Part shown: in pieces, positions 59,526 through 63,997 of the stretch
How the letters are laid out: every line of letters begins with the position of its first letter
Numbering within the stretch: the stretch's first letter is position 1
Assembly: GCA_033442325.1 (NCBI GenBank)
Contig: JAWQFM010000004.1
Location: 490,979-554,978 of the forward strand
Source: Salpingoeca rosetta
Lineage: Eukaryota; Protista; Choanoflagellata
DNA length: 64,000 nucleotides
Reading direction: 5' to 3'
Translations under genes and position numbers: made by a program
The notes under the pieces: model-generated
Seen by the model: the letters and a program-made list of their open reading frames with translations, nothing else
What the model was told of the DNA's origin: nothing
Database searches by the model: none

Positions 59526-60991
59526 TCAGCACGGCGATGGGCAGTTGTGCAGGGAGACGCCCGCATCGTAGCGGATGCACGTGCCTACGCCCTTGCAGTC
59601 GAGGCTGGTGACGCTGGTGTAGCGAATGTCGATGAATCCACCCACGCTGGTGATGCTGCCAAAGTCGATGTTAGCGAGGGCACGGTTGGATCTGACGTTG
59701 ACATCTACACCCACGCTGGTGATGCTGCCAAAGTCAATGCTGGTGAGCACATCGTTGCTGTAGATCGCGACGTATCCTTCCACACTAGTTAGGCTGCCAA
59801 AGTTGATGCTCGTGAGGGCGTCGTTCTCGCTGATGTCGATGTGTCCTCCACCCGCGCTGGTGATGCTTCCAAAGTCGATGTTGGTGAGGGCACGGCTGGC
59901 TCTGACCAAGATGCCTCCCACACCGCTGATGTTACCAAAGTCAATGCTGGTGAGGGCGTAGTTGCCACTGAAGCTGATGTATCCGCCCACGCTGGTGATG
60001 TTACCAAAGTCAATGCTGGTGAGCGCATCGTTGTTGTAGATCGTGACGTGTCTTTCCACACTAGCGAGGCTGCCAAAGTCGATGCTGGTGAGGACGGCGG
60101 TGTCAGTGATCTGCATGAATCCACTCACACTAGTGAGGCCGCCAAAGTCGATTGCAGCGAGTGTATCGCCGTCGACGTTGATGATACCCACAACCTTCTG
60201 CACAGACCCAAATTGCAGGCTCGTCAGCGTGCTGTTCAGCGCAACAGAGCCTGTCACAGACTCCAGGTTGTAGAACTCATCACAGCAGCAATTCACCACA
60301 GCAGCAGCTTGGCGCAGCTTGGCGCTCGCAAACTGGGCCCGAGACTTGAGATCGCCACAGTCCAGGGTTGCCGAACTGCCACCCATGCCCAGCACAGCCA
60401 AGGGCACCGCAACTGCAACGCCCACCACGACCGCCACCGCAAGCGCCACCAGTATCCTCTTCCAGCCACACCCGCGCTTGGTCACAACTGCATCGTCAGC
60501 AACCTCCATCGAGAACGCCTTGATGCCCGCCGGCGCCGCCCGCATCGACAGCGATCCAGACGAGGGCCGCCCGCTCCGCAGAAAAGCGGCGTCATCCACG
60601 CCAGCATCGGTATCGTCACCCACATCGCCACTCATCGTGCCATACACCCCAAAGCCAGCTGCATCAGGACAGGCATACACCTGGTCATCGTGCCCACCGG
60701 CAATCTCCTCGTATTTCTGCTCTGGGTTCCACGGCTGCTGTTGCTGATGCAGGCGCTCCGCGCGGGCCACGCCAATGCAGGCATCCGGGCCAGCATGGTC
60801 CTCGGCCTCGTCCGCGCGTCCCACATCGTACACCACCTCAGGTGTCGTCCCACGCTCTTCACCGGCCTGCCGCTGCTGCTGTGACTGCGTCTCCACAACC
60901 CGGCACTGCAACTGCATGCACACAAGCACCGTACATGTCAGGCACGCGTGAGTGCCCCGTGTCTCGCACAAACACAAACACGCACACACTT

Positions 60992-61034
<43 letters not shown>

Positions 61035-61310
61035 TGCCAGGCTTACCGTGCGTGTCATGGACTCGCGGTTCGTGGACAGGTGCTCCAACATGGCGGACAG
61101 TGTGCCGCATGCTTTTGCAGGCCGCGTGCCGTTCACCACATAGCTGCCATCCAAGCCTCTCTCCAACACGTGATGCTCCACAACACCAGGATGCGCAACC
61201 TGTCGGGCAGCAACATGGTGGCAGTGAGATCGATATCGTACCCATGGACACACACGCACACAGCACACCATACACACACACACATACACACACACGCACA
61301 CAGCACACCA

Positions 61311-61352
<42 letters not shown>

Positions 61353-61829
61353 CAGGCTGACGATCACAGCAGTGTTGCGTTTCTTCTTGCGCCTCACGAG
61401 ATAGTCCCCAGGCATTGCGTCGTCTCGGTCCAGTAGGATTGCCTCCGCCGCCTCGCGCGACATCACGGGCACATTCGGCGGCGGCAGCGCCCCATACCCG
61501 TGCCGTCCACGCTCAAACGGTGCCGCGTCCGCCGGTGCTGCTGTCTCAGGAATTGTCTGTCATGGGCAATACAAGAAACACAGGCATAGTTCAGCAAAAC
61601 TCACACACAGACACACAGACACACAGACACACAGACACACAGACACACAGACACACAGACACACACACAGACACACAGACACACACAGACACACAGACAC
61701 ACAAACACACACACAGACACACACACAGACACACACACACACAGACACACACACAGACACACACACACACACACAGACACACACACAGACACACACAGAC
61801 ACACACACACAGACACACACACACAGAGA

Positions 61830-61860
<31 letters not shown>

Positions 61861-62333
61861 GCGCACGAACACAATGCAAAAAGAATCACCTTCAGCTTCG
61901 CCACAATTTCGTCGACCAGAGCCGCAGGGACCTCAACGTGCGGCGCACCCTCGTCAGGGGTCCATGGGAAGTACGAAATGTCCTCTGACAGCCGAAACTG
62001 CGCCTCAGGCTCAGCAAAGTCGTCACACATCTTCACCAAAAAGAACGGCTTGCTGCGGTTGACAATGTATCGCAGCTCCTCAAACGTGCTGAACTTCGTG
62101 GCCGTCCGCTTGCCATATGTTCGCGTGCCCAGAATCACAGCCATCCGACACCCATGCAGTGCCCGAATCACCGCGCTCGCAATGTCATCGCCAGGCGCAA
62201 CGTCGCACAAAAACGTCTTGATACCGCGCTCCTCAAGTGCCCGCTCAAGCGCACGCCCCGCGTTCCTCGCCTCGCTGAAGCGAAGCGAAATAAACACATC
62301 AAACACCCCGTCTGTGCTCACAACACCAGCCAT
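59526..62333 (-). CDS. Type II membrane receptor: TIR - SH2 - Tyr motifs - TM - extracellular L-domain-like 22-aa repeats (728 aa)
   Basis: Phase-0 GT-AG exons 61890-62333 (TIR: [11 protein letters not shown]...RGIKTF...STFEELRY), 61353-61556 and 61047-61199 (SH2: [11 protein letters not shown]...PGDYLVRR...VEHHVL...SYVVN...TLSAMLEHL), 59526-60911 (YDV, YEEI, YAC, YGT; [24 protein letters not shown]; ~10 [14 protein letters not shown] repeats). Confidence 0.88.
59590..60270 (-). repeat. ~66-bp coding tandem repeat (L-domain/LRR-like solenoid)
   Basis: Recurring GCTGGTGATGCTGCCAAAGTCGATG-type core on the + strand at ~66-bp spacing. Confidence 0.9.
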
Positions 62334-63089
62334 CGTGAGATCGTGGTTGCTGTCCTCGCTCACTAAATTCGAGTCTTCACAGACGAACGTAAATGCACGC
62401 CACACACACGCACAACAAGACAGCAAATCACCGGAACCACATTTTCCTGTCTCCAGCCATTTCCCCACAAAATTCATGACACAGCGCAACCACGCCCACT
62501 TCACCATTAAATAATTTCAGCATTTCGCGATGATACCCGTAGTCGACCAATGTAGGAGATGTGTATTGGAGTGGACTTGAGGACTTGATACAGCAATGGG
62601 CAATGAACACAGACAGTAGGCAAGTGCAAGTGCAGGTGCAAGAGCAAGCGTGGTTGGTGTTGTGTGTATGTGTGTAGTGTGGTGTAGAGTAGTGGTGGTT
62701 CGGAAGCAGGGAGTGCTGGAGTGGAACCACTACAATACCGCTCGCCGTAGCCGGCAAACGACCTGCCCGTCCCTACACAGGGCTTGGTCGAAACTCACAC
62801 ATGCCAGCGCAAACACATTGAATGTGTTTGCGCGCGTACTCTGCTTTGCCACACAACCTTTACTGTCGTCATCGATCCACTGGCAGGATGCATTTTGTTT
62901 CTTGTTGATTTTCATTCAATTCTGTCTCTTCGTGTGAGATCACCTGATCATGTACAGCGACAATTACACGGATCTCGTGCGTGTGGAGCACGGCATCGAC
63001 GCGGACGTCGATTGGCTGCACCGGCTCACACGCTGTTCCAAGGAGGATGACTGAGGAGGATTAGGAGGACTGATAGCAGTTGCACTGCT

Positions 63090-63997
63090 TTGCCCACCAG
63101 TTTGCCTAGTCATCCAGAGAGACCGCCGCGTATCCTATCGCGAGAAGAGGAGAAGGCGCGAGTACGACACGACAAGGCGATTGCTCACATGGAGAAGGCG
63201 AAGGAGATCTTCATAGCGACGCTGGGAAGCAGCAACCCAACCACAGCGGCCGTTTACATGAACCTGGGCGTCGCCTACACCGACAGCGGTGTGCCCATCC
63301 CACAGTCCCTCAAAGACACGCTGTCCCGCATCCAGCCGTTTGCCAACACCCGCATGGCTGAACAAGAACAAGAACAAGAGCAAGGAGAACAGCAGCAGCA
63401 GGGTGGAGGTGACGACGAGGCACACGGTGTTGCTGCCAAGCCCACGGCTGTGCACGACCCTCATCAGTACAAGAAAGACGGCGATGCTGGCAGTGACTAC
63501 AACAAGAGCAGCGACGCGTCCTCCGAGACCACGCTGCAGCGCGTGTTTGTGCTGGAGACGACAGACACGCGTGCGGCGCATGCGTGCGTGCGCAAGATGC
63601 CTCTGTCTCGCACAAGTTTGTGGCGCGGCTGTGCTACCCAAACGACGTGCATGTGGCGGTGCTCGACCCCAAGCTGGGCGGCCTCCTGTCGGACCTCGTC
63701 GACGCATTCACCAAGAGCAGCGTGGCCAAGGACCTCGATGTGCTTGCGGCTGCAAGCATGGGTAACCGCATCTGCTTCACGGGCAGCAACGCCGTGCCGG
63801 TGTGGTCGCAAGCCAAGCTGTTTGCAAGCTTCCTCGCGCCCGCCTTCCACCCGTTTGCCCGCAGCGACCGCGTGCTGGGCGACGACAAGATCATGGAGCA
63901 TGTCCTGAACGACTACGGCCTCAGGCTCGTGCGCTACCCGACGCCTGGCCTGCTGCCCCACGCCGACACGGCACACGGGGCCATGCGGGATGTGTGA
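63090..63997 (+). pseudogene. TPR-containing gene fragment with apparent frameshift near 63590
   Basis: One kinesin-light-chain-type TPR (DKAIAHMEKAKEIFIATLGSSNPTTAAVYMNLGVAY); coding-like sequence then moves to frame 63584-63997. No clear start; at window edge. Confidence 0.45.

Follow-up and report, generated by a model that had tools for sequence, protein, structure and literature searches.

A receptor-like TIR protein of Salpingoeca rosetta with a family-conserved glutamate at the candidate catalytic position

In a 64,000-nucleotide stretch of the genome of the choanoflagellate Salpingoeca rosetta (assembly GCA_033442325.1, contig JAWQFM010000004.1, positions 490,979 to 554,978; the whole stretch is hereafter the window), the first coding exon of the gene PTSG_02597 encodes a genuine TIR domain. 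Its glutamate at residue 86 (Glu86) is, judged by alignment, homologous to the catalytic glutamate of the SARM1 (E642), plant and bacterial TIRs. This TIR is probably, if by no wide measure, of the enzyme type and would turn over nicotinamide adenine dinucleotide (NAD+) through Glu86. That a glutamate-bearing eukaryotic TIR outside the Toll-like receptors may be an NAD+-cleaving enzyme (NADase) is an already published idea, and most eukaryotic TIRs outside the Toll-like and interleukin-1 (IL-1) receptors keep the catalytic glutamate (Hurieva et al., bioRxiv 10.64898/2026.04.20.719644). Positions 62333..61890 on the minus strand hold 148 codons from an ATG, with FDVFISLR at residues 11-18 and STFEELRY at residues 82-89. 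Among 1.84 billion cluster representatives, the search found a 728-aa protein whose residues 1-148 are identical to the exon translation, namely S. rosetta PTSG_02597 (XP_004996095.1, UniProt F2U2R8), which carries the public name "uncharacterized".

The TIR domain and its conserved glutamate

The excised exon scored 28.5 bits against Pfam TIR_2 (cut-off 28) and 25.1 bits against Pfam TIR (cut-off 21.3). With the full-length protein as the query, TIR_2 scored 24.6 bits, below its cut-off, and TIR 21.5 bits, barely above; these reduced scores are the probable reason why the public name says so little. An alignment of 85 family sequences (A1) underlies the conservation counts, the family profile and the AlphaFold2 model, and 78 of its 85 members matched TIR_2 at E<=1e-3. 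The model has a predicted local distance difference test score (pLDDT) of 92.5 and a predicted template modelling score (pTM) of 0.87. It contains betaA (residues 13-16), alphaA (19-34), betaB (40-42), alphaB (51-61), betaC (64-69), alphaC (83-92), betaD (97-101) and alphaE (137-147), and the exon 1 domain shows the flavodoxin-like five-stranded alpha/beta fold with a BB loop. The glycine of this loop is present as Gly48 in a D-x-x-P-G stretch; Gly48 is conserved in 83 of the 85 sequences and Cys43 in 84. Gly48 may be equivalent to SARM1 G601, the BB-loop glycine required for assembly head to tail, for which G601P data and a primer-derived local SARM1 sequence are available (PMC8266388). The initial annotation had described a TIR domain with FDVFISLR and STFEELRY in one phase-0 exon, and Pfam, the structural model and the RNA joins described below all agree with it. 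PADLOC and NCBIfam models gave weak partial TIR matches only. The features of this exon that matter here are as follows.

61890..62333, minus strand: coding part of exon 1, the complete TIR domain (PTSG_02597 residues 1-148)
62184..62207, minus strand: BB loop, residues 43-50 (C-D-V-A-P-G-D-D), with the box-2-like D-x-x-P-G and Gly48
62076..62078, minus strand: codon of the candidate catalytic residue Glu86, in the STFEELRY motif at the first turn of alphaC

Across A1, position 86 is glutamate in 84 of 85 sequences, the remaining one carrying glutamine, while the neighboring Glu85 is glutamate in only 50; Leu87, Ser82 and Thr83 are also near-invariant. When the family profile was compared with the PDB, the top matches were Roq1, RPV1 and RUN1 (E 6e-5 to 2e-3), followed by the SARM1 TIR (5e-3); all four of these nearest solved proteins are NADases. 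Both phmmer and the family profile aligned F-E-E-L-R-Y-I with Roq1 L-E-E-L-V-K-I, which places Glu86 on Roq1 E86, a residue that we take to be the catalytic glutamate from what is known of the plant W-C-x-x-E-L motif; a mutant designated E86A, which may be that of Roq1, appears in several papers. A second line of alignment runs through an S. rosetta SAM-TIR protein at locus L031. Here, hhalign of A1 placed Glu86 on the L031 glutamate and Phe81 on an L031 aromatic residue, with one residue inserted at Glu85 (E 9e-4), and the L031 glutamate was aligned with high posterior probability to the W-x-x-x-E-L glutamate of Cat1, PdTIR and AbTir. Furthermore, the alphaC pattern of glutamate-hydrophobic-x-x-hydrophobic-hydrophobic is common to the PTSG_02597 TIR, Roq1 and SARM1 KEIVTAL (primer sequence, PMC8266388). 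Judged by sequence alignment, profile alignment and secondary structure, therefore, an alphaC glutamate occupies the catalytic position. The earlier proposal of a glutamate kept at this position holds to that extent, strengthened by the family-wide invariance of Glu86, its alignment to Roq1 and the bridge to Cat1, PdTIR and AbTir.

Several observations nevertheless weigh against an enzymatic TIR. Over alphaC, the alignment to Roq1 reaches a posterior probability of no more than ~0.5, and the hhalign probability of the A1-L031 alignment is 23%. The tryptophan of the W-x-x-x-E motif is missing; Phe81 stands there, five residues before Glu86, and position 81 in A1 is Phe in 67/85, Tyr in 10/85 and Cys in 7/85, with Trp in two S. 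rosetta paralogs. SARM1 Tyr568 is replaced by Leu17. A profile of the C-terminal half (A2) searched against the PDB returned chance matches (CspZ, 14-3-3) and no TIR. In the work of Hurieva et al. (bioRxiv 10.64898/2026.04.20.719644), a cyclic ADP-ribose (cADPR) isomer was obtained from 12 of 61 animal and 4 of 29 protist glutamate-bearing TIRs, so that about one in six such eukaryotic TIRs was active in this only broad assay. The same study found that TLR2, IL-1R9 and IL-1R10 keep the glutamate but point it away from the pocket. It also reported that the S. rosetta TIR F2UB80 produces cADPR in a glutamate-dependent manner; however, the F2UB80 and PTSG_02597 families are different, with an hhalign probability of 8.6% that covers alphaA-alphaB only. 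The accessions of PTSG_02597 and three paralogs were not found in the searched part of the supplements of that preprint (bioRxiv 10.64898/2026.04.20.719644).

Gene structure, membrane topology and modular reuse

The exon map was obtained by placing the public PTSG_02597 protein back on the window, and the spliced product is taken from that protein. The mapping gives four exons separated by three GT..AG introns of 333, 153 and 135 nt, all in phase 0. The 61890-61556 join is present in one contig of RNA run X4 and in one raw read of run X16, and the remaining two introns are both spanned by a second X4 contig. Coverage by run X16 is shallow and extends over 25 of 30 bins; its first mates map to the plus strand, an orientation that fits minus-strand RNA by most stranded-library conventions. 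Because RNA depth ends near 62400, position 62333 is the start codon of the first exon and not an acceptor. The features downstream of the TIR exon are listed in transcript order.

61557..61889, minus strand: intron 1, 333 nt, phase 0, GT..AG, filled with a (GT)n microsatellite; its join is seen in RNA
61353..61556, minus strand: exon 2 (phase 0-0), linker and N-terminal half of SH2, including the YLVRR motif (61389-61403) with the SH2 arginine R203
61200-61352, minus strand: intron 2, 153 nt, phase 0
61047..61199, minus strand: exon 3 (phase 0-0), C-terminal half of SH2
60912-61046, minus strand: intron 3, 135 nt, phase 0
59526..60911, minus strand: exon 4 including the stop codon (protein mapped to 59529), with tyrosine motifs, transmembrane helix and extracellular repeat solenoid
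60822-60833, minus strand: YDV motif in the cytosolic linker, exon 4
60702-60713, minus strand: YEEI motif in the cytosolic linker, exon 4
60387-60455, minus strand: transmembrane helix, residues 420-442, preceded by K/R residues

PTSG_02597 thus runs from the TIR through SH2, tyrosine motifs and a transmembrane helix to an extracellular repeat solenoid. Residues 177-260 match both SYK SH2 domains (E 5e-6) and keep the FLVR arginine, and YDV, YEEI and two further tyrosine motifs lie between SH2 and the membrane. YEEI is the optimal ligand of Src-family SH2 domains, and its binding by the SH2 domain of PTSG_02597 itself, in cis or in trans, is conceivable. No signal peptide was found at the N-terminus, and no Pfam leucine-rich repeat (LRR) model was significant for the ectodomain (LRR_5, E 0.11). 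Given the lack of a signal peptide, the K/R residues on the N-terminal side of the transmembrane helix and the repeats on its C-terminal side, the layout is that of a type II membrane protein with TIR and SH2 in the cytosol.

Some further observations concern the gene and its surroundings. All three introns are divisible by three in length and consist largely of (GT)n microsatellite, so that the gene can be read in one frame with two intronic stops only; intron retention would insert Cys-Val repeats. RNA runs X15-X17 pile up with loose ends at window positions 59622-59843 and 60066-60089, and these pile-ups carry a joint that goes back 446 nucleotides with 37 foreign letters, accompanied by G>T at 59719. 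They look like reads of more highly expressed paralogous repeat genes rather than of PTSG_02597. An open frame at 63090-63908 (plus strand), which lies opposite to the TIR gene in orientation and immediately upstream of it, has a tetratricopeptide-like stretch near its start.

The TIR belongs to a large family, with 760 cluster representatives at E<=1e-3 and 421 at E<=1e-10 among the 1.84 billion searched. The named members come from S. rosetta and S. urceolata, and the others are metagenomic. The family signature reads F-I-S-L-R-F-x-E-A ... F-S-T-x-E-E-L ... K-P-F-F-L-V-K-M-C, and PTSG_02597 retains all 23 signature residues. Glu21, Cys43, Gly74 and Cys103 are invariant residues specific to the family that have no counterpart in the classic motif. 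A family-motif scan of ~185,000 bacterial and archaeal genomes gave 14 pattern matches and no confirmed relative, an absence that is weak evidence because the scan used one motif. Matches in the ESM Atlas were generic bacterial TIR_2 clusters and were uninformative on the range of the family. The family is mostly choanoflagellate, divergent and barely detected by Pfam, and given that it sits at or below the Pfam cut-off, annotation-based surveys are likely to under-count it.

At least 35 loci of the S. rosetta genome match the family, 29 of which were aligned. Position 86 is glutamate in 25 of these 29 paralogs, glutamine in three and isoleucine in one, which implies that the fold tolerates the loss of the glutamate. 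The four paralogs without Glu86 (loci L009, L021, L022 and L025) tend also to change Gly48, Ser82 or Lys101, and these joint changes hint at a common functional site.

The initial annotation regarded the self-contained exon as a shufflable module and suggested a search for the same TIR exon fused to other partners. Many different partners were indeed found among family members.

PTSG_02597: SH2, transmembrane helix and solenoid
PTSG_02868: transmembrane helix and DUF5074-type repeat
PTSG_03080: SH2 and LRR
PTSG_06287: SecA/ResIII-like helicase
PTSG_12838: LRR-Roc-COR
Further family members: ankyrin repeats; WD40 repeats; NHL-LamG ectodomain with a C-terminal TIR

The TIR has no internal intron in any of the 29 aligned paralogs, and in seven of them (loci L001-L004, L009, L022 and L023) a phase-0 GT donor follows directly after the last alphaE residue; in the others, the reading frame continues past the TIR without an intron. 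PTSG_02597 and PTSG_02868 have the TIR exon in common and differ in the ectodomain and in the two symmetric 0-0 SH2 exons. Modular reuse of the TIR piece is therefore real. The notion of a shufflable exon stands in so far as the TIR is never split, seven paralogs have the phase-0 donor in common and the partners are diverse. It is limited in that the exon carries the start codon, unlike the internal exons of classic shuffling, and in that the boundary lacks an intron in most paralogs. Beside this, the juxtamembrane stretch (M-E-V ... K-R-G-C-x-W-K-R) and transmembrane helix, window 60387-60500, are near-identical in PTSG_02597 and PTSG_02868 (L002); the two ectodomains are unrelated, and SH2 exons occur only in PTSG_02597.

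Catalysis and competing explanations

The mechanism that we infer for an active PTSG_02597 TIR would begin with clustering, driven by a ligand or by phosphotyrosine and SH2, which would join TIRs head to tail through the BB loop. Such an assembly would open a composite active site, in which Glu86 would cleave NAD+, releasing nicotinamide together with either ADP-ribose (ADPR) or a cADPR isomer. S. rosetta possesses an ADPR-gated TRPM2 channel, one example of a receiver on which this product could act.

Alternatively, the TIR may be a scaffold only, which assembles homotypically with some of the many further TIR proteins of S. rosetta, passes its output through SH2 and phosphotyrosine, and uses the glutamate for structure or as an interface; this is possible, although we consider it unlikely. 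The SH2 domain with its intact FLVR arginine and the YEEI-type motifs of PTSG_02597 would suit such a role, as would the absence of the canonical tryptophan. The majority of assayed glutamate-bearing TIRs gave no product, and some inactive human TIRs retain the glutamate (bioRxiv 10.64898/2026.04.20.719644). A purely structural glutamate, however, does not sit easily with the near-invariance of Glu86 (84/85) beside a variable Glu85, nor with the glutamine and isoleucine paralogs, which show that the glutamate is dispensable for the fold. Moreover, each of the solved TIRs nearest in sequence is an NADase, and a MyD88-type adaptor is not known in choanoflagellates, which lack both MyD88 and IRAK (Richter et al. 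2018, PMC6040629). The initial annotation went further and opposed NAD+ cleavage to signaling through an adaptor. This opposition is not supported: besides its TIR, PTSG_02597 contains an SH2 domain that retains the FLVR arginine, as well as tyrosine motifs including YEEI, and since these are parts of an adaptor-type phosphotyrosine pathway, it does not follow that the protein would act as an NADase rather than through an adaptor.

The same glutamate could also support another chemistry, such as a 2',3'-cyclic nucleotide monophosphate (2',3'-cNMP) synthetase/nuclease activity, ADP-ribosyl transfer or NADP+ base exchange. Side activities of this kind are reported for plant TIRs and SARM1, and the family has its own invariant residues Glu21, Cys43, Gly74 and Cys103. 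Nevertheless, no specific pointer to another substrate was found and NAD+ cleavage is common to all glutamate-dependent TIR enzymes, which makes this explanation highly improbable. Decay of one paralog within a large gene family, for which at least 35 loci, members without signature residues and the low RNA depth over PTSG_02597 could be cited, has next to no likelihood in view of the intact 728-aa frame, the 23/23 signature residues and the correct splicing of all three introns in RNA contigs.

Relation to named TIR systems and implications

Several known systems invite comparison with PTSG_02597. The SARM1 TIR starts with D-V-F-I-S-Y-R-R, the same as D-V-F-I-S-L-R of PTSG_02597 except for Tyr568 (primer sequence, PMC8266388). 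SARM1 (human; C. elegans TIR-1) has Tyr568 and Trp638, whereas PTSG_02597 has Leu and Phe at a shifted spacing, and the SARM1 sequence match spans only the first half of the TIR. Orthology with SARM1 was rejected, as TIR-SH2-transmembrane-solenoid without ARM or SAM domains differs from ARM-SAM-SAM-TIR. The plant proteins Roq1, RUN1 and RPV1 were the best-matching solved structures (family profile E 6e-5). The F-x-S-x-R start and the alphaC E-E-L of Roq1 line up residue for residue, with 26% identity in structural alignment. In contrast to the TIRs of plant TIR-NB-ARC-LRR (TNL) receptors, PTSG_02597 carries four inserted residues ahead of alphaC and lacks the W-C motif. The plant TIR is joined to NB-ARC-LRR, while that of PTSG_02597 sits on a membrane receptor with SH2.

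Within S. rosetta itself, F2UB80 resembles PTSG_02597 in belonging to a multi-copy family with an alphaC glutamate. F2UB80 sits at locus L050 (contig C13, ~1706402), and its family carries the motif CDNVLLEWMAM at no fewer than 16 loci. An intron parts betaA from the rest of the TIR in 9/9 copies read, unlike the PTSG_02597 family, in which the TIR is never split. A back-translated pattern of the first F2UB80 residues had no match because the intron splits that TIR; a second pattern found the family. The F2UB80 family was rejected as an alignment bridge, given that forced and global hhalign modes gave no confidence. The SAM-TIR gene at L031 (L031:1009-2220, plus strand; contig C14, ~847123) has its glutamate in a C-R-K-E-V motif and the highest TIR_2 score in the S. 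rosetta genome, 75.9 bits; its TIR is closest to bacterial-type TIRs, with Cat1 first (E 5e-9), then PdTIR and AbTir.

The combination of TIR with SH2, Ank and Arm domains has been described in several choanoflagellate species (Richter et al. 2018, PMC6040629), and PTSG_02597 and PTSG_03080 are TIR-SH2 proteins of the kind listed there. The listed proteins were described there as intracellular, with no transmembrane helix, whereas PTSG_02597 has one, together with a type II ectodomain. Toll-like receptors share with PTSG_02597 a single membrane pass, an extracellular repeat solenoid and a cytosolic TIR. However, they have a signal peptide, an LRR ectodomain and a C-terminal TIR, and PTSG_02597 shows the reverse order, with an N-terminal TIR and SH2 before the membrane. 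A Toll-like receptor was therefore rejected on architecture (TIR at 1-148, transmembrane helix at 420-442, C-terminal ectodomain, no significant Pfam LRR).

If its TIR is active, PTSG_02597 would signal from the cell surface into the cytosol through a small-molecule messenger derived from NAD+. It would also provide a protist case for a view now taking shape, in which enzymatic TIRs are ancestral and adaptor-type signaling is derived. A bolder reading, which we regard as quite unlikely, holds that this is a eukaryote-born, receptor-coupled, NAD+-processing family in which PTSG_02597 is switched by phosphotyrosine and SH2 and wires tyrosine-kinase signaling to an NAD-derived messenger (ADPR or cADPR, TRPM2, calcium). 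If that were true, a link between tyrosine kinases and NAD messengers would exist in the closest relatives of animals. The narrower gain is a large choanoflagellate TIR family that annotation under-detects.
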